From positions 124,001 through 188,000 of IMG/VR virus record IMGVR_UViG_3300045972_000138: a DNA stretch of 64,000 nucleotides; one strand, given 5' to 3'. A program made the translations under genes and the position numbers. Positions 3,793 to 38,590 of the stretch are shown here, in pieces. The notes beneath the pieces were generated by a model. That model searched no databases and was not told where the DNA came from. It worked only from the letters and a program-made list of their open reading frames with translations. The stretch's first letter is position 1. Each line of letters opens with the position of its first letter.

Positions 3793-3830
3793 ATAAATAC
3801 ATACAACTAATTCAAGGGGTATGTATTTAT
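3793..3830 (+). promoter_or_regulatory. Late promoter embedded in a 12-bp inverted repeat that covers the start codon
   Basis: ATAAATACATAC (3793-3804) / GTATGTATTTAT (3819-3830); ATG at 3829. Confidence 0.7.
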
Positions 3831-6124: not shown

Positions 6125-9070
6125 ATTTACATCGATGCACTATTTAAAAGAGGCGGAGACAGTGAAATTATTAGAGTGGTCGAACGTGTAAACGGTAAAC
6201 GTGTTTACAAAGAATATCCGCCCGACTATCATTTCTATTTAAGCGATCCAAAAGGTACGAGCAAATCTATTTACGGTAATCCTGTAAAGAAAATTGTGCC
6301 ACGTACCTTTGTTGAAAAACAAAAGATACTTAAAACACTATCGCACAACACAACAAAATGGGAGAGCGACGTTGATCCTATTTTTAGATGTTTCGAGCAA
6401 AACTATTCATCAGGTGAAGCACCTGTACTGAACGTAGCGTTCTTCGACATTGAAACCAGCTTTGACAAAGAGAAAGGCTGGTCTGAAGCAAGCGAAGCAA
6501 ACAATTATATAACTTCAATATCTGTTCACTTACAGTGGCTAGACGAAATCATATGTTTGGCCGTACCACCCGATACACTAACCTGGGACGAAGCACAAGC
6601 AATCGCAGCCGAAGTTGGGAACACTGTACTATTTGAAAAAGAATCGGAAATGCTTAATGCGTTTATCGATGTTATCGAAGATGCAGATGCACTAAGCGGC
6701 TGGAATAGCGAAGCATACGATATTCCGTATACAGTAAACAGAATTAAAAAAGTTCTAGGTAAACACGAAGCTAGACGCTTATGTTTGTGGGAACAGGAGC
6801 CTAAAAAGCGCGAATTTGAGCGTGGTGGCAAGACATCTGAGACATACGATCTATTGGGCAGAATACACATAGATTATATGCAAATTTATAAGAAGTATAA
6901 CTATGAAGAACGACACAGTTATGCACTTAACGCAATTGCAGAAGCAGAATTAGGCGAAACTAAGGTTGCGTATGAAGGTACACTTGATGAACTTTATAAT
7001 GATGACTTCAAGACATTCTTAGAATACAACATCCAGGATACACGACTACTTGATCAATTAGACAAGAAGTTGCAGTTTATTGACTTAGCTAATTCTATTG
7101 CGCATTCATCTTGCGTATCTATTCAGACAACAATGGGCGCGGTTGCAGTTACAGACCAAAACGTCTTAATGGAAGCACACGGTAGAAACCTTGTATGCCC
7201 GGATAAGAAGCACAGCAAGGAAAGCGAAGCAAATAGAGCAGCAGGTGCGTGGGTTGCAACACCTAAGAAGGGATTCCACAAATGGATTGGGTCAACTGAC
7301 ATGAAGTCACTGTATCCATCTGTTATTCGTGCGCTGAATATGAGTCCGGAAACTATTGTAGGACAGATTACCCTGACACGAACGAACGATGCAATTAGAG
7401 CGTGGGAAGCTAAAGGCAGCAAATACACATTTGCATCTTGGTGGAACGACAGATTTAATGTGTTAGAAATGGAAGAGTTTTACGCAAATGATATTGGCAC
7501 AAAACTTACATTAGAAATGGAAGATGGTAATGTATTTGAACTTACAGGTGCAGAACTACGTGAGCTAATTTTCAACGGTAACCAGCCTTGGTGCATTAGT
7601 GCGAACGGTACTATATTCAGGACAGACATAGATGGTGTTATTCCGTCGCTGTTGTCGCGTTGGTATAGTGAACGTAAGATACTTCAAGGTATTATGACTA
7701 ACTATCAAGATATTGAAGACAATCCCAAAATCGAAGGTACAAAAGTCCCAGCAGATATGTTTACGGAAGCTGATATACTAGATGCAGAAATTAGAGCAAA
7801 TCCGTACTCCGAACACGATGCTTATAGACCTAAGAAGCTAAAGGAATTAATAGCCGAAGGTAATAATAAGCGTGTAGTGCAATATATGAACCAGCACGGT
7901 CTAACAGTTAAAGACGGCAAGGCAATTGCTAGAGATCAAAAGACATTAAAGAGTATTGTTGGCTTTTGGGATAAACGTCAACTTGTTAAGAAAATTAACT
8001 TGAACTCTGCATATGGTGCGTTGTTGAATGCTGGTAGTCGATTCTTTGATCAACGTTTAGGTCAATCAACAACGTTAACAGGTCGTACTATTACGCGACA
8101 TATGGCATCTAAGACAAACGAAATGATTGATGGTGAGTACAATCATTACGGAAGGACTATTATTTATGGTGATACTGACTCTTGCTATTTTAGTGCATAT
8201 CCTGTTCTAAAGGAAGAAATTGATAGGGGAGATATCTTGTGGACAAAGGAAAGTATTATTGATTTGTATAACGATCTTGCTAAGGCAGTATCTGCAACAT
8301 TCCCGGAATTCTTGTTAACTACATTAAATGTGCCGTTAAAGAAATCTACAGGTGTTATTGCAAGTTCGCGTGAAACAGTTTCCGAAAGTGGTATCTGGAT
8401 GGTTAAGAAGCGTTATGCTTGTTTAATGTACGATAAGGATGGTATTAGATTAGATGCAGCAGGCAAGGTAGGTAAAGTTAAGGCTATGGGCCTAGATTTG
8501 AAGCGTGCTGATACTCCTAAGTTTGTGCAAAAATTCTTATCCGAAATCTTAATGGATGCACTTACAGACAAAGGTGAGAACTTTATTATTGATAAGATTC
8601 GTAAATTCAAACAACAATTTGAAGATATGAAACCGTGGCAACAGGGTACTCCGCGAGCAGTTAATAATTTAACTCGTTACAGAGAGAAAATTGAATTAGC
8701 TGCAATGAAAAAGCTCAAAGGCGAAGATATGGGCAACTTGCACGTTCCTGGTCACGTTAGCGCAAGTTTGGCATGGAATAGATTGCGCGATATAAACAAC
8801 GATCAGCACGCAATGCGTATTATCGACGGTCAGAAAATTATTGTTTGTAAATTAAAAGACACAGTAGAAAACCGTACATCTAGCATTGCATATCCAGTCG
8901 ACGAATTGCACTTACCAGAATGGTTCTTAAGATTACCATTTGATAGCGAAGGTATGCAGGATGGCATTGTCGATAAGAAGATTGAGAACTTATTAGGTGT
9001 TCTAAAATGGGATCTTAGCAGAACCCAAAAAGAGCACGAGCACTTAGAAACATTATTCAGCTTCGCTTGA
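6125..9070 (+). CDS. polB: Family B DNA polymerase (T4 gp43-like); probable AUU start at 6125
   Basis: ExoI FFDIET, motif A DMKSLYPS, motif B KINLNSAYG, motif C YGDTDS, KKRY. AAGGAG at 6112-6117 sits 7 nt before ATT-TAC-ATC-GAT-GCA. Confidence 0.95.
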   Translation: MYIDALFKRGGDSEIIRVVERVNGKRVYKEYPPDYHFYLSDPKGTSKSIYGNPVKKIVPRTFVEKQKILKTLSHNTTKWESDVDPIFRCFEQNYSSGEAPVLNVAFFDIETSFDKEKGWSEASEANNYITSISVHLQWLDEIICLAVPPDTLTWDEAQAIAAEVGNTVLFEKESEMLNAFIDVIEDADALSGWNSEAYDIPYTVNRIKKVLGKHEARRLCLWEQEPKKREFERGGKTSETYDLLGRIHIDYMQIYKKYNYEERHSYALNAIAEAELGETKVAYEGTLDELYNDDFKTFLEYNIQDTRLLDQLDKKLQFIDLANSIAHSSCVSIQTTMGAVAVTDQNVLMEAHGRNLVCPDKKHSKESEANRAAGAWVATPKKGFHKWIGSTDMKSLYPSVIRALNMSPETIVGQITLTRTNDAIRAWEAKGSKYTFASWWNDRFNVLEMEEFYANDIGTKLTLEMEDGNVFELTGAELRELIFNGNQPWCISANGTIFRTDIDGVIPSLLSRWYSERKILQGIMTNYQDIEDNPKIEGTKVPADMFTEADILDAEIRANPYSEHDAYRPKKLKELIAEGNNKRVVQYMNQHGLTVKDGKAIARDQKTLKSIVGFWDKRQLVKKINLNSAYGALLNAGSRFFDQRLGQSTTLTGRTITRHMASKTNEMIDGEYNHYGRTIIYGDTDSCYFSAYPVLKEEIDRGDILWTKESIIDLYNDLAKAVSATFPEFLLTTLNVPLKKSTGVIASSRETVSESGIWMVKKRYACLMYDKDGIRLDAAGKVGKVKAMGLDLKRADTPKFVQKFLSEILMDALTDKGENFIIDKIRKFKQQFEDMKPWQQGTPRAVNNLTRYREKIELAAMKKLKGEDMGNLHVPGHVSASLAWNRLRDINNDQHAMRIIDGQKIIVCKLKDTVENRTSSIAYPVDELHLPEWFLRLPFDSEGMQDGIVDKKIENLLGVLKWDLSRTQKEHEHLETLFSFA

Positions 9071-9124: not shown

Positions 9125-9862
9125 ATGGAATTATTAGACGCGATTAAAGATATCGTAAAGCACACACATACTCTGGGCTTTATTGAAATGGTTAAAGTTA
9201 CAGGTACCAAGGCAGATTTGAAGATTGAAACAAAAGATGCCGATAATACCGTAATTATCTACGGAACAATGAACGAACCTGTGGTAGGTTTAGAATCCAC
9301 AATTGGTTTGTCCAGAATGGGACTGTTAAAAGGTACAATTGGTATGCACGAGAAGTCTACTGTTACACTTGTTAATGAAACACGTAACAATGCTACAGTA
9401 CCTACAGAAATTAAATTTGACAATGGTTCTAAGTTTATTTCTGCTTATAGACTCATGTCTGATGCAATGGTCACAGAACACGTTAAGGTGCCTGCATTTA
9501 AGGGTGCAGCGTGGGATGTAGTGGCAACGCCATCTGCTGATGCTATTTCTTTGTTAAGTTCTAACATCGGAATCTATAGCAGCTATGAAAAGCGTTTTAT
9601 CGTTAAGGTAGATGCAGGTACACTTATGTTTGATATTGGATCTGGTCCAACAGATCGTACAGAAGTACCGTTTGCAACAGGTGTTACAGGCACATTAAAG
9701 CATAGTTGGACATATCCACTATCGCAAGTGTTGAGTATTCTAAAGTTAACAGAAACAGCAGCAACATCAACAATGAGCTTCTCTGATGCAGGTGCATTGA
9801 AGATTGACATTGATAGCGGCTTAGGTAAGTATTCCTTTATTCTACCAGCAGGTAAGGCATAA
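9125..9862 (+). CDS. Probable sliding clamp / processivity factor (gp45-like)
   Basis: 245 aa, directly after polB, alternating beta/alpha pattern ending YSFILP; assignment rests on size, synteny and pattern. Confidence 0.55.
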   Translation: MELLDAIKDIVKHTHTLGFIEMVKVTGTKADLKIETKDADNTVIIYGTMNEPVVGLESTIGLSRMGLLKGTIGMHEKSTVTLVNETRNNATVPTEIKFDNGSKFISAYRLMSDAMVTEHVKVPAFKGAAWDVVATPSADAISLLSSNIGIYSSYEKRFIVKVDAGTLMFDIGSGPTDRTEVPFATGVTGTLKHSWTYPLSQVLSILKLTETAATSTMSFSDAGALKIDIDSGLGKYSFILPAGKA

Positions 9863-10153: not shown

Positions 10154-11728
10154 ATGACAAACAACAGAGTAAACTTTACAGAGCGCCATCTTCACGGTGG
10201 TTGGGCAAAATATCTACCAGCTATTAGCGGTTTCTACACTACACACCTAGGTAAGGATCTTGCAGACCCTACCTTTATTCCGCCAGATCGCGTACCTAAG
10301 GGATTTGAATTTGGAATGCAAGGTATTAATTTCTTTAACGAAGAAGATAGTTATTACAATTACAAATTCGGTCTATACTCGGCAGGTCATGCAGAACGCA
10401 ACTTAGCAAAATGCAATGCTAGAGAACCGATGATACATAATAGAGATCGTAACAAAACCATTCTTATTGGTGACTCAGGGGGTTTTCAGATTGCAACAGG
10501 TGTTATTAAGGTAGATTGGAAGACTGTTATGACACCGGCAGGCGACAAGTTACGCGAAGAAATCTTACGCTACTTAGAGCATACGGCAGACTGGTCAATG
10601 ACATTAGACGTACCTGCATTCGCAGCAGTACCGCCACTTAGCGAAAAGACGGGTCTAACAAAGTTCTCTGACTGCTTAGATGTATCCGAGCATAATCTAA
10701 AATACTTTATGGAACACCGTATTCCGGGTAAAACAAAATTCTTGAATGTATTATCGGGCACAGATGAGGCTACTTCTAAAGAGTGGTATGAACGAGTCGT
10801 ACCTTATAGTATGCCAGATGCAGTAGAAGCGATGGGATACACACGCGATCGTACACTAGAAGGGTGGGCCTTTGCCGGTATTAATATGAAGAATATGCCG
10901 TGCGTACTAAACAGACTATTAGACCTGCGCGACGATAATTTACTTGCCGATAAAGATTGGATTCACTTCCTAGGCATTGGTAGACTAGATTGGGCTTGCT
11001 ACCTGACATCAATTGAACGTGCATTGCGTAAGCATTATAATCCTAATATCAACATTAGTTTTGATGCTGCATCACCATTTGTTGCAGCAGGAGGTTATGC
11101 ATTATCTTATAATTACAATAAGTTTAGCGAAACTCAGTTAACATATGCAATGGGCCGTGGCGTAGATAATAAGGATTTGAAAGGCTCGACAGAAGCAATG
11201 CCTTTCCAGGGCCCGATTAATGACCGCTTAACAGTTGGCGATATGTGTGTTATGGGTCCAACTGATTTAAACAAGCACGGCAAAGTCGGTAATACAAGTT
11301 GGGACACCACATCGTATGCATTAGTTATGGCACACAATGTTCATAACCATATTCAGGCTATTCAGGAAGTAAATAGATTAGCAGACTTAGAATACTCAAG
11401 AGTACCGGAATTAGATATTAGTACTTGGAGTATTAAACCCGGTGGTAAAACTAAGGCCAAGCCGAAAAGTGTGCATATACCTAATAAGATAATTTATTTC
11501 AATCATTTTGTAAATCGTGTGTTAGATCCTGCAACAAAAAACCCGCGCCAACTGATAGAAGATAATATAGGATTCTTAGATCATATTAGCTTTAGTAGCA
11601 AAGCCCCTAAGAAAGTAGAAACAACCTTTGGTGATATGTGGGAAGTAATTGATGACGAAGTTGACCTGCCCGACATAGACGATTTAGCTGTTGAAGATAA
11701 CGACACATTAGCAAACGATGCAGGTTGA
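10154..11728 (+). CDS. dpdA: TGT-fold guanine transglycosylase, DpdA-like (7-deazaguanine DNA insertion)
   Basis: GDSGGFQ, SMTLDVP, IHFLG, SFDAASP and HN motifs of the TGT family; QueD-like and QueE genes lie nearby. Confidence 0.75.
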   Translation: MTNNRVNFTERHLHGGWAKYLPAISGFYTTHLGKDLADPTFIPPDRVPKGFEFGMQGINFFNEEDSYYNYKFGLYSAGHAERNLAKCNAREPMIHNRDRNKTILIGDSGGFQIATGVIKVDWKTVMTPAGDKLREEILRYLEHTADWSMTLDVPAFAAVPPLSEKTGLTKFSDCLDVSEHNLKYFMEHRIPGKTKFLNVLSGTDEATSKEWYERVVPYSMPDAVEAMGYTRDRTLEGWAFAGINMKNMPCVLNRLLDLRDDNLLADKDWIHFLGIGRLDWACYLTSIERALRKHYNPNINISFDAASPFVAAGGYALSYNYNKFSETQLTYAMGRGVDNKDLKGSTEAMPFQGPINDRLTVGDMCVMGPTDLNKHGKVGNTSWDTTSYALVMAHNVHNHIQAIQEVNRLADLEYSRVPELDISTWSIKPGGKTKAKPKSVHIPNKIIYFNHFVNRVLDPATKNPRQLIEDNIGFLDHISFSSKAPKKVETTFGDMWEVIDDEVDLPDIDDLAVEDNDTLANDAG

Positions 11729-11930
11729 GTTACAATCTAAACTGTCAACGCTGGACGAACTTATAAAAATCCAGCGTGATAGTTTAGAGCGTGGATACAT
11801 GCACGGCATGCTAAATGGGCTTATAATGGCACATTCAGTATTCTCCGGGCAGAGTCCTGAGTTTACTAAAATGCCTAAAGTGAAGAATAAAGTTAGACAC
11901 TATTTAAGGAACCAAAATGTCAAAAAGTGA
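11718..11930 (+). CDS. Hypothetical protein
   Basis: Coupled ORF; YMHGMLNGLI motif. Confidence 0.6.
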   Translation: MQVELQSKLSTLDELIKIQRDSLERGYMHGMLNGLIMAHSVFSGQSPEFTKMPKVKNKVRHYLRNQNVKK

Positions 11931-12249
11931 AAAGAAATTATTTGTAGTTGAGGCTATTAGTATGTTCCGCCATACATATGTCATTGAAGCAAAATCGTTA
12001 GAACATGCATACGATGAAGTAACAATGCGTGACTCAGGAAGCGAGTTAGACGACTTTGAAGAAGTATCACAACGTTTTCTAGGCGAGACTATATCCAATG
12101 GTCGTCAAATTAAAAGAAAAGAATTCAACGAATTGTTGGAAACATTTAAGAACGATAAAGATGAGTCAACTTCCTGGTGGATGGGCGAACGGCTTATTCG
12201 CAAAATCGATTATAAGCACGACAGAGAAGGCAACACAGTAGAAGAATAA
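11917..12249 (+). CDS. Hypothetical protein
   Basis: AAGGA SD, coupled ORF. Confidence 0.65.
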   Translation: MSKSEKKLFVVEAISMFRHTYVIEAKSLEHAYDEVTMRDSGSELDDFEEVSQRFLGETISNGRQIKRKEFNELLETFKNDKDESTSWWMGERLIRKIDYKHDREGNTVEE

Positions 12250-12491
12250 TGGCCGCAGAGATAACACACAACGATCTCCTGAATCAGGATTTAAATGTAG
12301 GTAACTACGTTGTGGCTTCGCGCAGGGGCCAGTATAGTAGCACAATGACTATATGCCAGATAACAAAAACAACGCCAAAGAAGGTCTTTCTTCAGGAAGT
12401 CAAAACAAAGAGAGAATGGTCGACCTGGCCGCAAGAAACTGTTAAACTTAGCGGTGAAGATGTTTTACATTATATTTTGAAGTATGTCTAA
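12249..12491 (+). CDS. Hypothetical protein
   Basis: TAATG coupling; D.L.Q.L.VG.YVV SH3-like start. Confidence 0.6.
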   Translation: MAAEITHNDLLNQDLNVGNYVVASRRGQYSSTMTICQITKTTPKKVFLQEVKTKREWSTWPQETVKLSGEDVLHYILKYV

Positions 12492-12818
12492 TACATCGGC
12501 ACCGTACATTCATATGGCACAAGTTATTACACCTACCTCTAAAACAACATACCTTGACGGAGTAGAGTCGTATTCTATATCTGCCATATTATCGAGGGAA
12601 GAGGAAGAAGACGAAATTATTCGCCGATTAAAAGGCAATGACGATAGCTTTACATTAGAGATGTGGATAAAATATGCTTGAATTCCCGGAAACAATTAAT
12701 CCAGATAGCGAACAACGGCTAATGGAAAAACTTATGTATGACGACGATAAAATTAAACTGTTAGATTACATACGTGGAGATATGCGTGCATTGTACCTAC
12801 TTGAACAAAAATTTAAAA

Positions 12819-13049
12819 ATGGTCACAAGAATACTAGAGGCTAAGTGGACTATACGTGATCCACTGTTTGTACCTAAGATAGATTATTCTAAACTTAGCG
12901 AAGACGAGCAGGCCGATCTTATTATTGAGAGACTTACTAATGGTGTTAGTAAAGATTTGTTAGAAGATGCTATTTCGTTTGCAATGTCAAAATTAATTGC
13001 AGAAGAAATTGACAACGAAATATTAAATTCACTCAAAGGCACAAAATGA
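12819..13049 (+). CDS. Small protein resembling an isolated segment of T4-type major capsid protein gp23
   Basis: TRILEAKWT ... SKLIAEEIDNEIL matches the gp23 R.LKA.WT ... E...EI.REI segment. Confidence 0.4.
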   Translation: MVTRILEAKWTIRDPLFVPKIDYSKLSEDEQADLIIERLTNGVSKDLLEDAISFAMSKLIAEEIDNEILNSLKGTK

Positions 13050-13390
13050 CCGTCTATACTGAACCCGGAAAAACAGCAAGCAAGATGATGTGGCATGCGT
13101 GTCGCGGTGGTGGGAGTCCGTATGTAAATTGCCAGTGCAATATAGATCATTCTGTCGACGCAACCGAAGATGAATATGATAACGGAGATTACGAAAGCAT
13201 AGGCTTTGTAGAACTAGATGGATTGGTCTTCGTTGATGGATGCGAAGGTTGCGAAAAGAAGTTAGCAAAATACGAACATTTTATATGGGACAATCGTGAT
13301 ATTATTCGCAGATATCTAAAGACAAGAGTGGATCAGGAAAAGGTCTGGGCAGACCAAGAAGCATCGTTAAATGTGTTAGCTGGAATTTAA
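13046..13390 (+). CDS. Hypothetical protein with Cys pairs
   Basis: ATGA coupling; CQC and CEGC. Confidence 0.65.
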   Translation: MTVYTEPGKTASKMMWHACRGGGSPYVNCQCNIDHSVDATEDEYDNGDYESIGFVELDGLVFVDGCEGCEKKLAKYEHFIWDNRDIIRRYLKTRVDQEKVWADQEASLNVLAGI

Positions 13391-13404
13391 ATTAAGGAAA
13401 TGAA

Positions 13405-14583
13405 ATGAGAAAATTGTACTATATGGGTTTAGAGTCTTATGAAGCTCGTTACACTCTACAACTGCAGGATTGGAACGAACGTGTATTCCAGGAGCGTGGC
13501 ATAGAATACGAACTCATCACAGGTTCCGAATTATCAACTGATAAAAAGATTGTAACAGGCAGTGTGCTCGATGCACATGGTCGTACTTATTACAGTATGA
13601 TGCAACATGCGAATCTTATCAAGGCAATGAAAGAAGGTAAGGTAACAAGCAAGGATGTAATCTTCTACGAAGATATGTTTACGCCCGGTATCGAAAGCTT
13701 ACCATACATTTTAGAGCAAGTACCTAAGAAATTTCGTCCAAAGGTGTATGTGCGTTGCCTGGCACAAAGTATTGATCCAGACGACTTTGTTAATCGCGAA
13801 GGTATGGCACACTGGATGCGTAAGTTCGAACAAATGGTTGACGAGTTTGTTGATGGAATTTTAGTCGCAAGCGAAGAAATGGTTGCACACTTGCGTATTG
13901 CAGGAATGAACGCACCTATCTATGTAACAGGATTACCATTTGGTAAAGAAGAAGTTGCAAGTCGTGTTCCGTATGTTAAACCTATTCATCAACGCGAACG
14001 CCGTGTGGGTTTTGCTGCACGCTGGGACGACGAAAAGCAACCGGAATTCTTTATGCAATTGGCACAACGCTTTTATAAGACACGCCCGGATGTCGAATTT
14101 GCAGTGTTCTGTGGTCACCCAGAACTCAAAAGCAATAACAAACAGCACGTCGAAATGGCACGCTATTTGGAAAACAGCGATACAGCAAACTTCAAAGTGT
14201 ACACTGGTTTGAAGAAAAATGATTACTATGAATTGCTTGCAGACAGTACCGTTTTATTTAACTGTGCATTGCAAGACTGGGTAAGTAACACAGTTAGCGA
14301 AGCAGACACATTTGGCACACTTACATTGTATCCAGCATACAGAAGCTTTCCAGAAGTTTTTGCTAACAATGCAAACAATATGTACATTCCGTGGAGCATT
14401 AAAGATGCCGCAGACAGATTAGAAAAGATGTTTGCTAATCCTACAAGTTACACAACAGGCAATGTGAGTGACTGGCAAGATGGTACAATCGGCCGCACAC
14501 TGGATGTATTCGAAGGTAAAGGCGAAGAATGGGCTCGCAATACACATGATTATAGAAAACACGTAGCAAAGGCAAAATATTAA
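13405..14583 (+). CDS. GT-B fold glycosyltransferase (GT4-like)
   Basis: FAARWDDEKQP, K..YY..LA.S.VLFN, and the NTVSEA...G.L.LYP donor-binding region. Confidence 0.8.
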   Translation: MRKLYYMGLESYEARYTLQLQDWNERVFQERGIEYELITGSELSTDKKIVTGSVLDAHGRTYYSMMQHANLIKAMKEGKVTSKDVIFYEDMFTPGIESLPYILEQVPKKFRPKVYVRCLAQSIDPDDFVNREGMAHWMRKFEQMVDEFVDGILVASEEMVAHLRIAGMNAPIYVTGLPFGKEEVASRVPYVKPIHQRERRVGFAARWDDEKQPEFFMQLAQRFYKTRPDVEFAVFCGHPELKSNNKQHVEMARYLENSDTANFKVYTGLKKNDYYELLADSTVLFNCALQDWVSNTVSEADTFGTLTLYPAYRSFPEVFANNANNMYIPWSIKDAADRLEKMFANPTSYTTGNVSDWQDGTIGRTLDVFEGKGEEWARNTHDYRKHVAKAKY

Positions 14584-14585
14584 AA

Positions 14586-14747
14586 ATGAAGAAACAACCA
14601 GATCCAAGATTACATCAACAAATTAGTTTCGCTAAAAGCGGATTGCGTATTTTAGCAGGAATAGGATTCATGACAGGTGAAGTAGTTGCGGCAGGGTTGT
14701 TTCTTATTTTAGCAGAAATACTCGGAATAGCAGAAGAATTAGTATAA
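14586..14747 (+). CDS. Small membrane protein (53 aa)
   Basis: Read manually: MKKQPDPRLHQQISFAKSGLRILAG...AEILGIAEELV. Confidence 0.6.
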   Translation: MKKQPDPRLHQQISFAKSGLRILAGIGFMTGEVVAAGLFLILAEILGIAEELV

Positions 14748-14757
14748 AGGAAATTTT

Positions 14758-15579
14758 ATGAATAGAGACGGACACAACAATGTAGCATTTTTTATTGGAC
14801 CAGAAGTAGAACATACTCCTGCATATTCCAGACGCACACTATTTGTAGTAGGTAGGCAAGGTGTTGCCGATATTATTAAGCAAGCGCAAGATAATAAGGT
14901 GACACATATTTTTATGGGCGCAAACCATTCGTTTGATGTTGATCCAGCACATCCAGACGAAACAGTTAAGGCATATTGGGACAAAACAATCACTGCATTG
15001 CTTGACAAGGGTTTCTGGGTAACATTAGATTACGAAGCACATCTACACGAGATGGTGCTAAAGATGTTGAACCCAGGCATTTGGCAGTCACGCATTTTTG
15101 TTCCATTGCTAAGTGTGCGTATTCCTAAAATTGAAACAACAAGCAATAATTTGACAATTAAAATTGACGATGTTGATTTTAAAGCAACCAACCGCGGCGT
15201 ATGGTGTATGCACTTTCACGAAGTTACAGATAGCAATCGTTTCACTGATTGGCAAGACTACGAATCGGATTCTGTTATTGGTAGTACAGCACAACAACAG
15301 GCAGCATCTATTATGGCTAATTTAGAAGGTATTGTCGAACCAAGAGCAACAAAAACACTAGCTGATACACTAGCTGATATTCCGGCACCAACTGAGCCAC
15401 TTAATCAGACAGAGTTAGGATTGGATGCTAATCCAACAACAGCGTTGAAACCAGAAGAAGATAGCACTGTAGTAATTGTTAAGACACCGGAAGACGCTGC
15501 CGCAGCATACGCCGATGGTACTACGACAGATCCTCTAAGTGCTGAAAACTCTAAGAAACCAAGGGCAGCTAAGAAATGA
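14758..15579 (+). CDS. Hypothetical protein inside the deazaguanine cluster
   Basis: AAGGA SD; coupled to the QueD-like gene; EVEH, HIFMGANHSF, KIDD and W.DY motifs; low-complexity C-terminus. Confidence 0.7.
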   Translation: MNRDGHNNVAFFIGPEVEHTPAYSRRTLFVVGRQGVADIIKQAQDNKVTHIFMGANHSFDVDPAHPDETVKAYWDKTITALLDKGFWVTLDYEAHLHEMVLKMLNPGIWQSRIFVPLLSVRIPKIETTSNNLTIKIDDVDFKATNRGVWCMHFHEVTDSNRFTDWQDYESDSVIGSTAQQQAASIMANLEGIVEPRATKTLADTLADIPAPTEPLNQTELGLDANPTTALKPEEDSTVVIVKTPEDAAAAYADGTTTDPLSAENSKKPRAAKK

Positions 15580-15977
15580 GTGCAACAATGCAAAAAATGA
15601 TATGGGTTACCTTTAAGAAAGAAGGTATACACAGATATCCGGAAGCGTTAACCGATCCTGCTCTTGCAACCAACGATGAGTATGATGTTAGCTTCCTAGG
15701 ATATGCACATAGACATATTTTTCACTTCAAGGTATGGATCGATGTAATGCACGAAAACAGAGACATCGAGTTTATCCAATTTAAACGTTGGTTAGAAAAC
15801 TTGTATGCACAGTCCATACTTGAACTTGATTATAAGTCTTGTGAAATGATGAGTAACGATTTATATGAAACAATTTCTGAAAAATATCCTAACAGGGAAG
15901 TTTGGATCGAAGTCTCAGAAGACGGAGAAAATGGATCATTTACAAGATACACGCCAATTAGATCATCCGATATTTGA
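15576..15977 (+). CDS. QueD-like T-fold protein (LxxxHRHxF; DpdL-type candidate)
   Basis: EGIH, LGYAHRHIF, SCE and EDGEN motifs. Confidence 0.75.
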   Translation: MSATMQKMIWVTFKKEGIHRYPEALTDPALATNDEYDVSFLGYAHRHIFHFKVWIDVMHENRDIEFIQFKRWLENLYAQSILELDYKSCEMMSNDLYETISEKYPNREVWIEVSEDGENGSFTRYTPIRSSDI

Positions 15978-16152
15978 TAAGAAATATAAGGCCACTGTTA
16001 TATTTCCTACAAACACAGATGTGAGTTGGATGGATTGGGTTAATAAAAATACACAGAATAGGGGAGTCGATATTCAACTTCTAAACGACAAAGTATATGT
16101 CGCATTTGAAGACGAAAACGACGCCCTTATCTTTAAGATAAGATATCTATGA
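15931..16152 (+). CDS. Hypothetical protein
   Basis: GGAG SD before ATG 15931; ends in FEDENDALIFKIRY, a recurrent small-phage-protein C-terminus. Confidence 0.55.
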   Translation: MDHLQDTRQLDHPIFDKKYKATVIFPTNTDVSWMDWVNKNTQNRGVDIQLLNDKVYVAFEDENDALIFKIRYL

Positions 16153-17153
16153 AACATAAAATATTAGTAACTGGCGGCAACGGATTTATTGGGTCACAGG
16201 TTGTAACATCCTTAATAGATGCAGGGCACGATGTTACTGTGGTAGACTTGGTAGGTAAAAAAGAAGGTGTACCTGGATTACTAGGTAGATGTGTTGAACA
16301 AGACTACTACGCATTCTTCTCGAATAACACAGTTAAATATGATACAGTAGTGCATTTAGCTGCCGAGCATATAGTGCCCCAGAGCGTTACTGAGCCTGAC
16401 AAATACTACATAAATAACGTAATAAAAATGAAGAGTATGCTTGATTCTATGCGTACTACAGGCATTAAAAATATTATCTTTAGCTCAAGCGGTAATGTAT
16501 ATGGTCGGCAAGGCGCAGCAGGTTTTCCACTTACAGAAGACCTATATTACGATCCGGAGAATCCGTATGCATCAACTAAGGTTGCAGGCGAAATGCTTAT
16601 TAAGGATTACGCAAGAGCATACGGTATTAACTATGTAAATTTTAGATATTTCAACGCAGCAGGAGCCGACCCGGAATGTAGGTTTGGATATACACAACGT
16701 CCTGCCACACATGTCATTCCTATTTTGTGTAACAAGATTTTAAATAAACAGACATTTACTATTTTTGGAACAGACTATCATACACAGGATCATACCTGTG
16801 TTCGAGATTATGTACACGTTGCAGACATTGCATCTGCACACTTAAAAGCATTAGACTTCTTTGATAACGGCGGCAAAAACGAAACATTCAATTTGGGCGG
16901 CGATAGCACAGGTGTCAGCCTTAAGGATTTAGTAAGGTATGCTGCAGAAGTTGTCGGAGTAGAACCAGTAGTCGAATATGGCCCGCGCCGCGAAGGTGAT
17001 CCTGCTATTTTGATTGCTAATATTTCTAAGGCACAAAAGATATTAGGTTGGGAGCCAAAATATGACATTAAAGAAACTATTACGCACGCTTGGAATTGGG
17101 AAAGAAAATTCATCGACTACGATATCGACAGATGGAGCAACGGGGAGCATTAA
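16149..17153 (+). CDS. galE: UDP-glucose 4-epimerase (extended SDR)
   Basis: TGGNGFIG, HLAA, FSSS, Y..TK (NPYASTK), FRYFNAAGA, RDYVHV and RREGD motifs. Confidence 0.92.
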   Translation: MKHKILVTGGNGFIGSQVVTSLIDAGHDVTVVDLVGKKEGVPGLLGRCVEQDYYAFFSNNTVKYDTVVHLAAEHIVPQSVTEPDKYYINNVIKMKSMLDSMRTTGIKNIIFSSSGNVYGRQGAAGFPLTEDLYYDPENPYASTKVAGEMLIKDYARAYGINYVNFRYFNAAGADPECRFGYTQRPATHVIPILCNKILNKQTFTIFGTDYHTQDHTCVRDYVHVADIASAHLKALDFFDNGGKNETFNLGGDSTGVSLKDLVRYAAEVVGVEPVVEYGPRREGDPAILIANISKAQKILGWEPKYDIKETITHAWNWERKFIDYDIDRWSNGEH

Positions 17154-17199
17154 TACAATAGATTATTCTAAGTACCCGGATTATACAGGAATTACAAAA

Positions 17200-17733
17200 A
17201 TGACAACGATAAATTCTCAGGCGGGTGCCTATACACAAAATACAGGAATGACAATTACCGGTGCAATGGCATCTAATATAACAGGTACCGTTGCAGCGAA
17301 TGCTAGTCAGTACTCTATAGTAAATGCCAACTATAACAATATTGGTATTGGACAACCGATTAGTACTACGATACCTGGTTCACAATATAACATTAGTAAC
17401 GGTTATACGGTCGGGTTCGCGCCGCCTGTATCAACAGTTGCATTCCACAATGGTTCAAATCAAGAAGTAGTTCGTCTAAATAAAGATGGTAGTGTTACGT
17501 GGGCAAGCGGTATCAATATAGATGATGCAGCTGATGCATTTGCTAAATCTATACAATTAGGTGCCGAGCGTAGCGCAGGTATAACGGCAGGCGTTAAACA
17601 GCGTATGCGTGATACAATTTTTGAAGAAATGATTGAGATGGCTAAGATAAAAGGAACACTCGATGCAGACGAGTTGACATATATGCTAAGTGCTGCTAAA
17701 ATAATGGATAAGCTAAAAGGCAAATATGAATAG
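17200..17733 (+). CDS. Hypothetical protein
   Basis: AGGA SD before ATG 17200; low-complexity N-half. Confidence 0.6.
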   Translation: MTTINSQAGAYTQNTGMTITGAMASNITGTVAANASQYSIVNANYNNIGIGQPISTTIPGSQYNISNGYTVGFAPPVSTVAFHNGSNQEVVRLNKDGSVTWASGINIDDAADAFAKSIQLGAERSAGITAGVKQRMRDTIFEEMIEMAKIKGTLDADELTYMLSAAKIMDKLKGKYE

Positions 17734-17841
17734 AATTAAACAAGCATTGGTTGTTACCGTTTTGGTATGCCTAGCTGTAGGCGCGGTAACATCAATTATT
17801 GTATTTGGAAATCACTCGGGCTTACCACCTATGGTGCCATA

Positions 17842-18015
17842 ATGAAAAAATATATATTTGAACTAACTGTCACTGAAGGTAATTCCGAATTCTGGGAAGA
17901 GTTGCTCGCAACTAATGCCACAGGCTGCGATGACTTGCTGCAACAAATCGGAGATGCGTTGGCAGAACACGGATTTGATCCAATCGTTAAACTTGTAAAA
18001 TACGAGGACAGATAA
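17842..18015 (+). CDS. Hypothetical protein
   Basis: TAATG-coupled start; sits in a run of contiguous small ORFs. Confidence 0.55.
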   Translation: MKKYIFELTVTEGNSEFWEELLATNATGCDDLLQQIGDALAEHGFDPIVKLVKYEDR

Positions 18016-18219
18016 TGTGGGATCCTTTCGCACAATACAATGTCATGCGCGGCACTGGTTGCGGTGTATTATTTTCGTTGTTTGCTGTATTATTCTTTAT
18101 TGTAACTATGCCGTATATGGCATTTGCACAATGGAGGCATAGTAAACTGAAAAGAGATTTTGGTTCATTTGACGAACTTAAGGCACAACGAGACGAACAC
18201 GGTATAGTAAGGAGAAAAA

Positions 18220-18585
18220 ATGATTAAATGGCACGAAGGCATTACTGAACAAGAGTTTACAGATGCAATAAATGATGCGGTAATTAACGCACTTAAAGAT
18301 GGTGTAAATGCTAAACCGCCAATTGCAGATTATAAAGATTACGTTAAAGCACATCTGAAGTTCTGGGCAGAGTCGGGTGTCGCTGCTCCAGGCAACGAAT
18401 TGCAATCAATACAGGCGTGGCTTAGATATTCATCGAATCATTCTAAAGAAGAAATTCAGGATACCTGGAGGACTAGAATGACTCTGCTAATGAAAGCAGC
18501 ACAGGAAGTATACGATGGTGGCCAGGCCGAAGAAGATAGAATCGGTATTTACGACAACCGTCCAGATATGGATAGAGGCAGATAA
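18220..18585 (+). CDS. Hypothetical protein
   Basis: AAGGAG SD. Confidence 0.6.
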   Translation: MIKWHEGITEQEFTDAINDAVINALKDGVNAKPPIADYKDYVKAHLKFWAESGVAAPGNELQSIQAWLRYSSNHSKEEIQDTWRTRMTLLMKAAQEVYDGGQAEEDRIGIYDNRPDMDRGR

Positions 18586-18788
18586 TGAATGAACGAACTG
18601 AGGAATTAGCAAGGCAGGCGTTTGAGTTTGGATTAGACACTGATCCTATTCTATATTACGAAGTAGGGAAGTTTGCCGAGTCGATTGTTAAGGAATGTGC
18701 ATCACTATTTGACCCGGATTTAACAGTGTTACATGAAGAGCGAATTTTGCGAGAAAGCATTTTGAATCATTTTGGGATTAAGGAATAA
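18585..18788 (+). CDS. Small MNER...HFG family protein, copy 1
   Basis: Similar to 18791-19012 and 47376-47558 (FAE.IV.EC...HFG(I/V)K). Confidence 0.65.
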   Translation: MNERTEELARQAFEFGLDTDPILYYEVGKFAESIVKECASLFDPDLTVLHEERILRESILNHFGIKE

Positions 18789-18790
18789 CG

Positions 18791-19012
18791 ATGAACGAAC
18801 GAATTAACGAACTCGTCGGGCAGGCAAAGTTTATGGCAGAAGAAAGCACAAATAAGAAAATTTCTGCCAACACTGAATTGTATATGTTTGCTGAAAAGTT
18901 CGCTGAGTTGATTATTAGGGAATGTCGTGTTACAATGAGTGAGAACTTTCACGAATGCAGGACTGCATCTCTAATGGATAAAGTAATCAAAGAACACTTT
19001 GGAGTTAAGTAA
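18791..19012 (+). CDS. Small MNER...HFG family protein, copy 2
   Basis: AAGGA SD; paralog of the upstream ORF. Confidence 0.65.
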   Translation: MNERINELVGQAKFMAEESTNKKISANTELYMFAEKFAELIIRECRVTMSENFHECRTASLMDKVIKEHFGVK

Positions 19013-19893
19013 TGTTCGGAACTAATGAAATTATCGGTAAGAAGTATTTTAAGGATGCACCTGCAGACAGCTTGTTTGTAACAAGTATGTTCTTCACACT
19101 CCAAGGAGAAGGCCCGTATGCTGGGCAACCTGCATTGTTCATCCGCCTGGCAAAGTGCAATTTAGATTGCTCATTCTGCGACACATTCTTTGACGATGGC
19201 GATTGGATGACGTTTGACGAGATTGACGAAAAGATTGAAGAAACTATCGAAGCCTACTGGACTAACAAAGGGCAAGAAGTACCTCAGTGGGCAGTTAATA
19301 CCACACCTGGCGTTAAGGCAAATCCTGGTATCGTGCTTGTAATGACCGGCGGCGAGCCGCTATTGCAAGATAACATCTCTGCGTTTATGCAACAGCAACT
19401 TCAGTACTTCAAAGCGGTGCAAGTCGAAAGCAATGGTATTTTAGATACAGAAATTCCGCGTCTTGTTACTCTTGTATGCAGCCCAAAGTGCATGGAGAAA
19501 GACGGCAAAGCTGTAAAGTATTTTAGACCAAGCAAAACTATTCTCGAAGTAGCAGATTGTTTAAAGTTTGTAATGAGTGCAGACGTAGATAGTCCATACA
19601 ATAATGTGCCGGATTGGGCGCACGAATGGAAGCGGAATACAGGCAAAGAAATCTATTGCAGCCCAATGAATATTTATAATAGCCTGCCACAGAAGATTAA
19701 ACTCATTCGTGCCGATAATGGTAAGATCACAATGGCAGAGCGTAGTACAGTCGATGAAGTGATTGACTTCTGGGAGCCAGGCGTTCTTAATTTAAAAGAG
19801 AATGAACTTAACCATAAGTATACAGCACGTTACTGTATGGATCATGGATTCAAACTTAACTTGCAAATGCATTTGTACGCAGGATTATCTTAA
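19012..19893 (+). CDS. queE: 7-carboxy-7-deazaguanine synthase (radical SAM)
   Basis: F.TLQGEGP..G.PA.FIRL..CNL.CSFCDT, TGGEPLLQ, VESNG, CSPK and LQ.H motifs. Confidence 0.9.
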   Translation: MFGTNEIIGKKYFKDAPADSLFVTSMFFTLQGEGPYAGQPALFIRLAKCNLDCSFCDTFFDDGDWMTFDEIDEKIEETIEAYWTNKGQEVPQWAVNTTPGVKANPGIVLVMTGGEPLLQDNISAFMQQQLQYFKAVQVESNGILDTEIPRLVTLVCSPKCMEKDGKAVKYFRPSKTILEVADCLKFVMSADVDSPYNNVPDWAHEWKRNTGKEIYCSPMNIYNSLPQKIKLIRADNGKITMAERSTVDEVIDFWEPGVLNLKENELNHKYTARYCMDHGFKLNLQMHLYAGLS

Positions 19894-30738: not shown

Positions 30739-31842
30739 ATGGCAGCAGCAATTGATACAACCCGCACAGAACGCCCGCGCGACATTCGTACACTCGTTAT
30801 TCGTTGTATGAAGGTTGGTCGTCCTCCGATGATCTGGGGACCTCCTGGCATCGGCAAGAGTGAACTGATTGCAGAAATTGGTGTGGAAATGAATCGCCCT
30901 GTTATCGATATGCGTTTGCTGTTGCTGGAACCTACTGACATCAAGGGTATTCCGTATTTCGATCCCGAAACCAAAACAATGAAGTGGGCACAACCTGCAG
31001 ACTTGCCTACTGAGTTGAGCCTGAACAACGCAATTTTGTTCTTGGACGAAATCAATGCTGCACCTCCTAGCGTGCAGGCAGCAGCATATCAACTTATCCT
31101 TAACCGTCGCGTTGGTGAATATCGTTTGCCCGCAGGTGTTAGCATGATTTGCGCTGGTAACCGTGAAAGCGATAAGGGTGTTACTTACCGTATGCCAAGT
31201 CCGCTTGCTAATCGTTTGGTCCACTTTGAAATGGCTTGCAACTTCGAAGACTGGCAAAAATGGGCTATTGCAAACCACGAACATGCTGACGTTGTTGGTT
31301 TCCTGAGCCACCACAAGCACAAGCTCTTCAACTTTGATAGCAAGTCTCCCGACAAGGCATTCGCTACACCACGTAGCTGGCACTTTGTTAGCGAACTTAT
31401 CGTCGATGATGGCTCGCTTACTGAATCGCTCAACACTACATTGGTGGCAGGTTCGGTTGGTGATGGCCTTGCAACAGAGTTCAGCCAACACCGTAAGGTT
31501 GCTTCCAAGATGCCTAAATCCGAAGATGTGCTGTTGGGCAAGGAAACTCAACTCAATGTCAAAGACTTGAGCGCAATGTACTCGCTTACCATCTCTATGT
31601 GCTACACACTCCAAGAATGGGTTGCACGCTCCAAGACTAAGGAAGATGGTTTTGATGTTGCTAAGTGGCATGAATGTGTTGATCACTTCTTCAAGTTCAT
31701 GATGGCTAACTTCCAAACTGAAATGATCGTGCTTGGTGCTAAGACTGCACTGCGTGATTACCAACTGCCAATCAATCACCGTCAACTCAAAGAGTTCAAG
31801 GGCTTCCATGACAAGTACGGTAAGTACATTCTGGAAGATTAA
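30739..31842 (+). CDS. MoxR-family AAA+ ATPase
   Basis: Walker A GPPGIGKS, Walker B LFLDEIN, AGN, and PSPLANR arginine finger. Confidence 0.9.
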   Translation: MAAAIDTTRTERPRDIRTLVIRCMKVGRPPMIWGPPGIGKSELIAEIGVEMNRPVIDMRLLLLEPTDIKGIPYFDPETKTMKWAQPADLPTELSLNNAILFLDEINAAPPSVQAAAYQLILNRRVGEYRLPAGVSMICAGNRESDKGVTYRMPSPLANRLVHFEMACNFEDWQKWAIANHEHADVVGFLSHHKHKLFNFDSKSPDKAFATPRSWHFVSELIVDDGSLTESLNTTLVAGSVGDGLATEFSQHRKVASKMPKSEDVLLGKETQLNVKDLSAMYSLTISMCYTLQEWVARSKTKEDGFDVAKWHECVDHFFKFMMANFQTEMIVLGAKTALRDYQLPINHRQLKEFKGFHDKYGKYILED

Positions 31843-31858
31843 TAGCAGGTGATACAGT

Positions 31859-31885
31859 GTAAGGGGCTACGGCCCCTTACCTTTT
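31859..31885 (+). terminator. Rho-independent terminator
   Basis: GTAAGGGGC-tacg-GCCCCTTAC followed by CTTTT. Confidence 0.85.
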
Positions 31886-31940
31886 GACATAAAATTAAAT
31901 ATAGTTTATAATTAGATATCACTTAACTTTTAAGGATTAT

Positions 31941-32267
31941 ATGAAAGACGGTTTAATTTTTGGATTCAATGCAATAGTTGCTGTTATTGCACTGGTCTTC
32001 GGTATTGGTGCGTTGTCGTACGGTATGTACGCATATTTTGCACCAAAGTACACAGCAGTTGACAATCAGGTGTTCCACGAGTCGCAGCAATACAATGACG
32101 GAATGATCCGTGATTTGGAAAACTTGCAAATGGAATATCTTAGCGCAGATGCTGACAAGAAGGATGCAATCCGCGCAATAGTGTTGCATCGCTTTAGTGT
32201 GTATCCGGAAGATAAGATGCCGCCAAATCTCCGTAACTTTTACAATCAACTTAAATCTGGAAAGTAA
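31941..32267 (+). CDS. N-terminally anchored membrane protein
   Basis: Hydrophobic segment at residues 5-33, then a helical domain. Confidence 0.75.
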   Translation: MKDGLIFGFNAIVAVIALVFGIGALSYGMYAYFAPKYTAVDNQVFHESQQYNDGMIRDLENLQMEYLSADADKKDAIRAIVLHRFSVYPEDKMPPNLRNFYNQLKSGK

Positions 32268-32270
32268 ACA

Positions 32271-32777: not shown

Positions 32778-32795
32778 TTTAACTGAAAGATTATT

Positions 32796-34667: not shown

Positions 34668-34668
34668 T

Positions 34669-36148: not shown

Positions 36149-36160
36149 GACTATTATCGG

Positions 36161-36205: not shown

Positions 36206-36228
36206 AACACACAGAAACGGAGTTATAT

Positions 36229-37326: not shown

Positions 37327-37329
37327 TTG

Positions 37330-37377: not shown

Positions 37378-37395
37378 ATTCTATTTAAGGTATAT

Positions 37396-38589: not shown

Positions 38590-38590
38590 T

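Follow-up and report, generated by a model that had tools for sequence, protein, structure and literature searches.

We find that a PA5oct-related jumbo phage carries a gene set for replacing guanine in its DNA with a 7-deazaguanine, and that a GT4-type glycosyltransferase (GT) is an integral part of this module in the phages that share its long type of DpdA. A glycosylated deazaguanine is therefore the best-supported reading of the cluster, although the attachment of a sugar is inferred from gene linkage only and is chemically unproven. The region was examined within a window of 64,000 nucleotides (positions 124,001 to 188,000 of IMG/VR record IMGVR_UViG_3300045972_000138), which lies in a 237.6 kb contig. 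The genes of the cluster (10154-19893) and the two preceding replication genes are as follows, in window positions.

6176..9070 (+), family-B DNA polymerase
9125..9862 (+), sliding-clamp-like protein
10154..11728 (+), long-form DpdA-like DNA (deaza)guanine transglycosylase, predicted TGT fold, 524 aa
11718..13390 (+), seven small ORFs (56-114 aa), a lineage-specific insert between DpdA and the rest of the module
13405..14583 (+), GT4-type GT-B glycosyltransferase
14758..15579 (+), o273, a conserved alpha/beta protein of unknown function (N-terminal ~175 aa) with a disordered C-terminal tail
15576..15977 (+), DpdL, a QueD paralog proposed as a 7-carboxy-7-deazaguanine decarboxylase
16149..17153 (+), UDP-glucose 4-epimerase GalE, the likely supplier of the sugar donor
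17200..17733 (+), o223, unknown protein; the longest ORF starts at 17062 inside galE, and 17200 is a candidate start downstream of the galE stop
17767..19012 (+), five small ORFs (67-121 aa) of unknown function
19012..19893 (+), QueE-like radical-SAM 7-carboxy-7-deazaguanine synthase

To address whether the cluster described in the first-pass annotation is real, we re-examined each of its genes. The observation was confirmed: all named genes are present at the stated coordinates and in the order that it had given (a DpdA/TGT-like gene, small ORFs, a GT-B glycosyltransferase, an orphan, a QueD-like gene, galE, small ORFs and queE), all on the + strand and tightly packed, with gaps of -92 to +171 nt and many overlaps of 1-14 nt. 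The module sits in the replication gene block. The polymerase was identified by Pfam DNA_pol_B and exo1 and is 54% identical to the polymerase of the PA5oct-like phage PAC2, where the gene is split by a homing endonuclease, while the clamp-like protein matches phrog_12062 and is 41% identical to the PAC2 protein annotated PCNA.

The DpdA-like protein belongs to a long, very divergent subfamily that no library HMM detects, as it gave no Pfam, PHROG or NCBIfam hit. However, its AlphaFold2 model (pLDDT 77.5, pTM 0.83) matched only tRNA-guanine transglycosylases and DpdA 7ui4 among the top 50 Foldseek hits. Five TGT active-site motifs, DSGGFQ(107), LDVP(151), GWAFAG(237), HFLGIG(271) and FDAA(303), are collinear with those of E. 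coli Tgt and invariant in the family, whereas the CxCxxC zinc motif is lacking. In profile-profile alignment with hhalign, the protein matched the ACP17/X1/ZZ01/BCSR5 DpdA group with 94% probability, but the short DpdA3 group with only 11%.

The glycosyltransferase scored 28.8 bits against Glycos_transf_1 (PF00534; cut-off 26.4), 17 of 18 members of its family hit PF00534, and a profile of the family hit GT4 enzymes in the PDB, including GlgM and PglH. It is 57% identical to the GT inside the QueE-PRTase-QueD-FolE-DpdA-DpdL cluster of phage BUCT-ZZ01. The epimerase scored 303.6 bits against TIGR01179 (cut-off 262.3), and its GxxGxxG NAD motif and catalytic S...YxxxK motif are intact. QueE was identified by phrog_2076 (5e-50); its five best NCBIfam hits are all QueE models, at 40-70 bits, but lie below their cut-offs. 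It has the CX3CX2C motif (C49xxxC53xxC56) and a GGEP motif and is 43% identical over the full length to ACP17 QueE.

The gene that had been called QueD-like is DpdL. It gave no PTPS hit but matched phrog_17812 and carries the DpdL signature LxxxHRHxF (L41GYAHRHIF49, with H45 and H47) as defined in PMC10516641, and it is 49% identical to ACP17 DpdL and 31% to that of phiST. Its start overlaps the stop of o273 by 4 nt. The o273 protein was found next to DpdA in 77 of 80 IMG/VR loci and in ACP17 (34% identity), and it contains invariant GVWC and TLFVV motifs. Its model has a pLDDT above 85 over residues 10-120, but a structure search returned no significant PDB fold match and only one unnamed AFDB cluster. 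No family hit was obtained for o223, which is conserved in the close relatives L016 and L017, or for the five small ORFs that follow it, which are weakly conserved in close relatives only. Likewise, the seven ORFs after DpdA gave no informative family hits; they are partly conserved only in the closest relatives and are absent from the more distant clade, where DpdA-o273-DpdL-GT are contiguous.

The first-pass annotation had stated that no folE or queC appears in the window, which is correct. When we searched the rest of the contig, as it had proposed, the true FolE (genome 79052-79729) and QueD (80027-80524) were found about 44 kb upstream of the window start, about 54 kb from the cluster. 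In contrast, QueC, Pfam TGT and a phosphoribosyltransferase (PRTase) were not found in the 237.6 kb, although the contig is about 62% complete and the absences of QueC and PRTase are provisional. The complete 364.6 kb relative G001 also lacks a PRTase but has a weak QueC-like PP-loop protein. This gene content places the pathway on the CDG branch known from phage phiST, whose DNA carries 7-deazaguanine (dDG), rather than on the preQ0 branch.

Since a GT and an epimerase within the cluster had been taken to suggest a sugar on the deazapurine or a second co-regulated hypermodification, we went on to test whether the GT is linked to the module in other phages. Among 11 GenBank phage lineages with DpdL, all 7 with a long DpdA have the GT next to DpdA or DpdL, often with overlapping stop and start codons, while all 4 with the short DpdA3, including phiST, have none anywhere in their genomes (Fisher p = 0.003; the lineages are few and not fully independent). 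This pattern was obtained by clustering and was confirmed by whole-genome checks. The GT abuts DpdA in the PA5oct-like phages, ACP17, X1 and BCSR5, with a stop/start overlap in PAC2 and ACP17 and gaps of 1 and 12 nt in X1 and BCSR5, and it abuts DpdL in ACP17 and ZZ01 and overlaps it by 4 nt in Phosso. In the present phage the GT is separated from DpdA by 1.7 kb of small ORFs. As a second test, we examined IMG/VR loci, and all 63 with more than 2.3 kb downstream of DpdL have the GT. The order PolB-clamp-DpdA is conserved in all relatives, and the order PolB-clamp-DpdA-o273-DpdL-GT(-GalE-like) is also conserved. GalE, however, is only a lineage-specific accessory: it accompanies the 392-aa GT subtype, which is directly followed by a GalE-like SDR in the distant clade, but it was found in only 11 of 80 DpdL loci and is a fragment in PA5oct. 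A structure prediction of the DpdA and GT complex gave no answer.

Comparison with described systems shows what is known and what is new. The phiST-type dDG system (Cui et al. 2023, PMC10516641) has the same CDG-branch logic, with FolE, QueD and QueE without QueC, DpdL with the LxxxHRHxF motif, and a TGT-fold enzyme beside the replication genes. Its DpdA3 has 259 aa against 524 aa here, and phiST-type genomes carry a MazG/dUTPase-like gene and, in phiST, a small kinase-like gene, whereas the present module adds a GT, GalE and o273. The clusters of Acidovorax phage ACP17 and of Pseudomonas phage PA5oct, a cultured relative, lie in the same replication-module context and share orthologous DpdL (49-57% identity), QueE (43% to ACP17), the GT family, the long DpdA (50% to the PA5oct group) and, in ACP17, an o273 homolog. 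Their GT is the 342-365 aa subtype, 21-23% identical to this one; PA5oct has only a 170-aa epimerase fragment plus a PRTase, and ACP17 keeps FolE and QueD in the same block. In neither phage has the literature assigned the GT to the pathway. The T-even glucosyltransferases AGT and BGT and other hmC/hmU DNA glycosyltransferases are likewise phage-encoded GT-B enzymes that use UDP-sugar to decorate an already non-canonical base for anti-restriction, but they show no detectable sequence relationship and their acceptor is a hydroxymethyl group on a pyrimidine, whereas the presumed acceptor here is a deazapurine with no hydroxyl. HuiG of the huimycin pathway is a GT4-type enzyme encoded beside FolE, QueD and QueE genes that places a hexosamine, from UDP-GlcNAc, at N2 of a 7-deazaguanine-type base. 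It acts in an actinomycete secondary-metabolite pathway on a free, O-methylated preQ0 base, with no DpdA and no DNA, and offers an analogy based on the shared GT4 fold.

Taken together, these results partly support the interpretation in the first-pass annotation: its identification of the cluster is right, the identity of the QueD-like gene, the location of folE and queD and the nature of the DpdA needed correction, and its central inference that the GT (plus GalE) belongs to the pathway and adds a sugar is considerably strengthened by comparative genomics but remains a well-founded hypothesis. What the analysis establishes is the gene content, the sequence motifs and the linkage of the GT to the module, while every enzymatic step is inferred. 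By homology, FolE, QueD and QueE would convert GTP to 7-carboxy-7-deazaguanine. DpdL would process it, probably by decarboxylation to 7-deazaguanine, as proposed by Cui et al. 2023 but never shown in vitro. From its predicted fold and motifs, the long-form DpdA would exchange guanine in phage DNA for the deazapurine. We hypothesize, with moderate confidence, that the GT then uses a UDP-hexose whose pool GalE interconverts to add a sugar to the deazapurine, either on DNA after insertion or on the free base before insertion, with o273 as a further conserved component. Because 7-deazaguanine has no hydroxyl group, an unusual C-, N- or acyl-glycoside would be required, with C7, N2 or the CDG carboxyl as conceivable acceptor atoms, and there are no chemical data for any GT-carrying phage. 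Published observations fit this view: PA5oct DNA, reported to carry a modified G of unknown structure, resists five G-containing restriction enzymes and is targeted by END nucleases that sense hypermodified bases (PMC12191111), the GT4-type enzyme HuiG glycosylates a free 7-deazapurine at N2, phiST, which has no GT, carries plain dDG, and ACP17 dpdA plus dpdL alone gave no dDG in E. coli, for which the authors suggested that other enzymes may be needed (PMC10516641).

The alternatives appear less likely, though two of them remain possible. The phage may make plain 2'-deoxy-7-deazaguanine or dCDG, with the GT, GalE and o273 merely co-transcribed and serving, for example, to remodel host surface glycans for superinfection exclusion or to glycosylate a protein. 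Indeed, phiST reaches 100% dDG without a GT, the base lacks an obvious acceptor, jumbo phages often carry GT clusters interpreted as surface-polysaccharide modifiers (PMC7824862) and GalE is a common auxiliary gene. We consider this reading doubtful, since the GT adjoins DpdA or DpdL in both gene orders across the seven lineages, is perfectly absent from the DpdA3 lineages and is present in all 63 informative IMG/VR loci, no other polysaccharide genes (flippase, polymerase, further GTs) occur in the block, and PA5oct DNA is recognised by sensors of hypermodified bases. A similarly tentative possibility is that the GT acts before DNA, on the free deazapurine or a nucleotide as HuiG does, so that the sugar either rides into DNA through a long-form DpdA adapted to a bulky substrate or is a transient handle removed later. 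The GT co-varies with the long DpdA type rather than with DpdL as such, it is contiguous or coupled with DpdL in ACP17, ZZ01 and Phosso, and a PRTase in the PA5oct and ZZ01 clusters points to small-molecule chemistry, but no PRTase was found here or in the complete relative and an N2-glycosylated base would still need to fit a TGT-type pocket. The present data do not distinguish this ordering from glycosylation after insertion.

Two further readings are improbable. The TGT-fold enzyme could act on phage or host tRNA so that the module tunes translation, as the fold is shared with tRNA transglycosylases, the window encodes 4 tRNAs and RtcB, and an Atlas feature search placed a tRNA-queuosine mannosyltransferase cluster among the neighbours of the GT (a lead only). 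This is very unlikely given the position of the gene between the clamp and other replication genes in all relatives, its homology to the ACP17 DpdA group, the G modification of PA5oct DNA itself and the lack of a QTMAN_N Pfam hit in any of the 18 GTs. Least likely is that the GT glycosylates a hydroxymethyl-pyrimidine and lies in the deazaguanine block by coincidence, for which there is only the precedent of the GT-B enzymes T4 AGT and BGT: the contig has ThyX but no ThyA-family hydroxymethylase, the PDB profile search returned no T4 glucosyltransferase at E <= 1, and the linkage statistics point to DpdA and DpdL.

In our favored view, the region is the core of a DpdL-type 7-deazaguanine DNA-modification system embedded in the replication module of the phage, and its product would be a hexosylated 7-deazaguanine in virion DNA that blocks restriction, which would be the first glycosylated purine-type base known in DNA.

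The 237.6 kb linear IMG/VR phage contig that carries the deazaguanine cluster is rated by CheckV as about 62% complete, and in the window, bases 124001-188000 of this contig, nearly all genes are on the + strand with a GC content of about 0.40. The cluster lies directly downstream of a family-B DNA polymerase and a clamp-like gene, and from the polymerase to QueE the genes are packed with small gaps or overlapping stop and start codons, suggesting one transcription unit. A megablast of the region against GenBank phages found no match. The observation made in the first-pass annotation held, as every gene that it named was present at the place where it had been put. The following features are referred to below, in window coordinates:

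6176-9070, DNA polymerase
11718-13390, small ORFs, lineage-specific fillers
13405-14583, GT4-type GT-B glycosyltransferase (GT)
14758-15579, o273, a conserved protein with an N-terminal alpha/beta domain
16149-17153, GalE (UDP-glucose 4-epimerase)
17767-19012, small ORFs, lineage-specific fillers
19012-19893, QueE-like protein with a radical-SAM motif

To determine whether the assigned functions are supported, we tested each protein against family models, motifs and structures. The GT passed the Pfam Glycos_transf_1 gathering score (PF00534, 28.8 bits against 26.4), 17 of 18 members of its family hit this model, and the family profile hit GlgM, PglH and other GT4 enzymes of known structure. 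An Atlas model of the top feature-search cluster (score 1.00), rather than of this protein itself, aligned to GT4 families with TM 0.71-0.79. In contrast, no phage DNA glucosyltransferase of the T4 AGT/BGT type was returned by the GT-family profile against all PDB sequences at E <= 1. GalE passed the NCBIfam equivalog cut-off (TIGR01179, 303.6 bits against 262.3) and has an intact NAD motif (G9xxGxxG) and catalytic triad (S112...Y140xxxK144). For QueE, the radical-SAM CX3CX2C motif and GGEP are present and the phage PHROG phrog_2076 "QueE-like" matched at 5e-50, while the five top NCBIfam hits are all QueE models but scored only 40-70 bits against cut-offs of 200-300. Two labels of the first-pass annotation, "dpdA/TGT-like" for a 524-aa protein and "QueD-like" for a 133-aa protein, could not be confirmed with libraries, as neither protein had a Pfam or NCBIfam hit.

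To address the identity of the 524-aa protein, for which PHROGs also gave no hit, we aligned its homologs and found an invariant GDSGGFQ motif and further conserved aspartates, with D107, D152 and D304 invariant across 29 homologs. An AlphaFold2 model (pLDDT 77.5, pTM 0.83) matched only tRNA-guanine transglycosylases, archaeosine TGT and the DNA preQ0 insertase DpdA (7ui4) among its 50 best Foldseek hits in the PDB, with probability 1.00 and TM by target about 0.5. When the protein was compared with E. coli Tgt, the motifs DSGGFQ, (F/L)D(E/V)(C/P), G(Y/W)A(V/F)(G/A)G, (Y/H)(L/F)(M/L)G(V/I)G and FD(C/A), which include the two catalytic aspartates (DSGGFQ ... FDxxxP), were found in the same order and with similar spacing (89/143/209/242/263 in E. 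coli Tgt against 107/151/237/271/303). A profile of the 524-aa family against PDB sequences gave only chance saposin hits, and hhalign against single-sequence E. coli Tgt gave 13% probability, although the alignment was in register at the GYAVGG motif; the assignment rests instead on the fold search and motif collinearity. The protein did not match the Pfam TGT model PF01702, but neither did the transglycosylase candidates of ACP17, X1, BCSR5 and phiST (DpdA3), so that this shows divergence and does not exclude membership. The structural zinc site (CxCxxC...H) is missing, as there is no CxCxxC in the window protein or in ACP17 DpdA, while it is present in E. coli Tgt at residue 302.

Profile-profile comparison linked the 524-aa family to the DpdA group of phages ACP17, X1, BUCT-ZZ01 and BCSR5 at 94% probability, while it did not link convincingly to the short DpdA3 of the phiST/Ahp1/D479/RHph group (11%). 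The label "dpdA/TGT-like" is therefore right at superfamily level, and the protein is a long, divergent DpdA-type enzyme. The family is very large: 5182 clusters (90% identity) scored E <= 0.001 among the 8000 candidates examined, with 899 representatives at 50% identity, all of them unnamed. A search for contigs encoding two distant DpdA-family representatives returned only short or unrelated contexts. The long DpdA family also occurs with a preQ1-type pathway, since in Vibrio phage 2.275.O (MG592671: 330216-337242) a 596-aa partial homolog lies beside QueF, a YhhQ-like transporter, a queuosine-biosynthesis gene, an amidohydrolase and FolE.

The 133-aa protein carries L41-G-Y-A-H-R-H-I-F49, which is exactly the LxxxHRHxF signature, replacing the QueD motif CxxxHGH, that Cui et al. 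2023 (PMC10516641) give for DpdL, the QueD paralog they propose as a 7-carboxy-7-deazaguanine (CDG) decarboxylase. L41, H45, H47 and F49 are invariant in 16 family members, and the Arg between the two His is in all but two. The protein is 49% identical to the ACP17 protein that carries the same motif and position and 31% identical (E = 1e-6) to the phiST one. "QueD-like" is thus correct but imprecise, as the protein is DpdL.

The true QueD and FolE are at genome positions 80027-80524 and 79052-79729, beside ThyX, whereas QueC, Pfam TGT and a phosphoribosyltransferase were not found in the 237.6 kb of this incomplete contig. The genomic context expected for DpdL, with FolE, QueD, QueE and DpdA present and QueC absent, is thus seen in this contig, within the limit of its about 62% completeness. 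The pathway therefore stops at, or branches from, CDG. This is the situation in phiST, whose guanines are fully replaced by 2'-deoxy-7-deazaguanine (dDG; PMC10516641). In relatives, the QueC-like hits are a weak PP-loop protein with no homolog in this contig; in G001, a complete 364.6 kb relative, it is a 202-aa protein (QueC 30.9 bits, C-terminal part only) at 1090-1698 of locus L034, genome ~38.5-39.1 kb. A small phosphoribosyltransferase sits next to QueE in the PA5oct-like cluster of PAC2 (L004:12922-13356) and in that of the cyanophage BUCT-ZZ01 (L005:3093-3554), which hints at nucleotide-level chemistry on the deazapurine, but none was found in this genome or in the complete relative, and the nucleotide-route idea therefore does not generalise. 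Genome positions 77971-78657, 82667-83890 and 84151-85731, outside the window, hold ThyX next to FolE and QueD, a ClpX-like AAA+ ATPase with a zinc finger and, on the minus strand, a CSS-motif/EAL c-di-GMP phosphodiesterase-like gene. At genome positions 73552-76315 (3552-6315 of L003, a stretch of the same genome), DUF444 (YeaH-like) and SpoVR-like genes lie side by side, and the 646-aa ORF just upstream (genome 71642-73582) may be the PrkA partner.

We next asked whether the glycosyltransferase is part of the system, and related sequences settle much of this question. The closest cultured relatives are the PA5oct-like Pseudomonas jumbo phages (DpdA 50% and polymerase 54% identical), in which the order is PolB, clamp, DpdA, GT, DpdL, an epimerase fragment, a phosphoribosyltransferase and QueE. 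In these phages the polymerase gene is split by a homing endonuclease (L004:2581-7807 in PAC2), while the ortholog in the window (6176-9070) is uninterrupted. The best GenBank match to the GT (57%) is in the unrelated cyanophage BUCT-ZZ01, where it sits inside QueE-PRTase-QueD-FolE-GT-DpdA-DpdL-GT. ACP17 has DpdA-GT-DpdL-QueE in direct succession, with DpdA and GT overlapping by 4 nt, X1 and BCSR5 have GT directly before DpdA, and Phosso has DpdL overlapping GT. The GT-type clusters of BCSR5 (L014:9375-12123) and X1 (L013:4843-6455) add a PAPS-reductase-like PP-loop protein, an AAA_28 kinase-like protein and, weakly, a PIG-L-type de-N-acetylase, suggesting lineage-specific elaboration, possibly a GlcNAc-derived sugar or an amide.

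Clustering of ORFs from 11 GenBank phage lineages that carry DpdL gave a clean split. Seven have a long DpdA and the GT, whereas four (phiST, Ahp1, D479 and RHph_I1_18) have the short DpdA3 and no GT and instead carry a dUTPase/MazG-like gene (a separate MazG-like gene in phiST). A whole-genome search with the GT profile found no GT in those four and found the ACP17 control. The 7/0 against 0/4 table gives Fisher p = 0.003, although the lineages are not strictly independent and the co-occurrence counts are not phylogenetically corrected. In IMG/VR, 17 contigs found through DpdA, including the complete 364.6 kb relative, show the order PolB-clamp-DpdA-o273-DpdL-GT-(GalE-like). Of the best 80 contigs found through DpdL, out of at least 599 matching stretches, 63 carry the GT, and the 17 without it all end less than 2.3 kb downstream of DpdL. 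Two GT subtypes exist. A GalE-like SDR follows the 392-aa subtype in the loci examined, with BUCT-ZZ01 as an exception, while the 342-365-aa PA5oct/ACP17 subtype is not followed by one. GalE is thus an accessory tied to one GT subtype, as expected if it tailors the donor sugar. A complex prediction for DpdA plus GT gave no answer and was not used as evidence.

o273 has a conserved N-terminal alpha/beta domain of about 175 aa with an invariant GVWC motif, and lies next to DpdA in 77 of the 80 loci and in ACP17, but not in PA5oct, X1, BCSR5 or ZZ01. Pfam, PHROGs and NCBIfam gave no hit for it, fold searches of its model against the PDB and AFDB clusters found no significant named match, and the Atlas feature search gave only weak glycoside-hydrolase-like leads below 0.8. 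Elsewhere in the window, a GC-richer block at 30739-40244 (0.44-0.46 against about 0.40) holds a MoxR-like AAA ATPase, an SPFH/Band-7 protein, an RtcB RNA ligase (37327-38589) and a DUF2201 metallopeptidase/VWA protein. Four tRNA genes (Arg-TCT, Met-CAT, Leu-TAA and Thr-TGT) are found at 51338-55105, and two PKD-domain proteins, probably virion surface or adhesin-like, at 3829-6048 and 49558-50742.

Previously, Iyer et al. 2021 noted a deazaguanine synthesis/incorporation system in PA5oct. This phage is reported to carry a modified G of undetermined structure and is restricted by END nucleases that sense hypermodified bases, including one specific for modified G; as PA5oct has a 50% identical DpdA ortholog, this is indirect evidence only for base exchange on DNA. 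Cui et al. could not reconstitute dDG in E. coli from ACP17 or phiST dpdA plus dpdL, and suggested that further enzymes may be needed (PMC10516641). A literature search on DpdL alone returned mostly unrelated acronyms, and no paper in the searchable literature was found to link a glycosyltransferase to phage DpdA clusters. A chemical precedent exists outside phages, since HuiG, a GT4-type enzyme, N-glycosylates a free 7-deazapurine in huimycin biosynthesis.

We propose that GTP is converted to CDG by FolE, QueD and QueE, that DpdL acts on CDG, probably by decarboxylation, that the long DpdA swaps guanine in DNA for the deazapurine, and that the GT adds a hexose from a UDP-sugar pool adjusted by GalE, either on DNA or on the base before insertion. 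While the presence and order of the genes, the motifs, the matches of the predicted fold and the linkage of the GT come from the analysis itself, the activities are inferred: the first step from homology, the second from a proposal in the literature that is unproven even for phiST or ACP17 DpdL, the third from fold and motifs, and the fourth from linkage only. In this view the sugar might be carried at C7 (as a C-glycoside), at N2 or, if the carboxyl is retained, as an acyl glycoside. We consider it very likely that the region is a deazaguanine DNA-modification module and more likely than not that the GT functionally belongs to it, while glycosylation of the virion base remains tentative, at best an even chance. 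The interpretation in the first-pass annotation, that a GT and GalE inside the cluster suggest a sugar added to a deazapurine base, is partly supported.

The alternatives considered are that the phage makes plain dDG with an unrelated GT, that the GT acts on a free precursor, that the module has a tRNA target, or that the GT has a hydroxymethyl-pyrimidine target. The sequenced part of the genome has ThyX and no ThyA-type enzyme, which argues against the last of these. The complete relative G001 has a ThyA-family gene where this phage has ThyX.

All known DNA glycosylations decorate hydroxymethyl-pyrimidines, and all known DNA deazaguanines are sugar-free. A GT hard-wired into a deazaguanine module would join the two strategies and would require new glycosyl-transfer chemistry on a deazapurine. 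It is possible, though somewhat less likely than not, that a widespread family of phages makes a glycosylated 7-deazaguanine in DNA, for example a C7- or N2-hexosyl-dDG, by means of a long-form DpdA, DpdL and a dedicated GT4 enzyme. The family includes the therapy candidate PA5oct, ACP17, Xanthomonas, Burkholderia and Sinorhizobium phages, a cyanophage and hundreds of environmental jumbo-phage contigs. If so, this would be the first sugar-decorated purine-type base in any genome, it would identify the G hypermodification of PA5oct, and it may also explain why ACP17 dpdA plus dpdL alone failed to produce dDG in E. coli. The hypothesis is directly testable, and PA5oct, ACP17, X1 and BCSR5 are cultured. 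Given the abundance of the DpdA family and of DpdL-like stretches in IMG/VR, the modification could be common in environmental phage DNA and could affect sequencing, restriction and defence-system studies.
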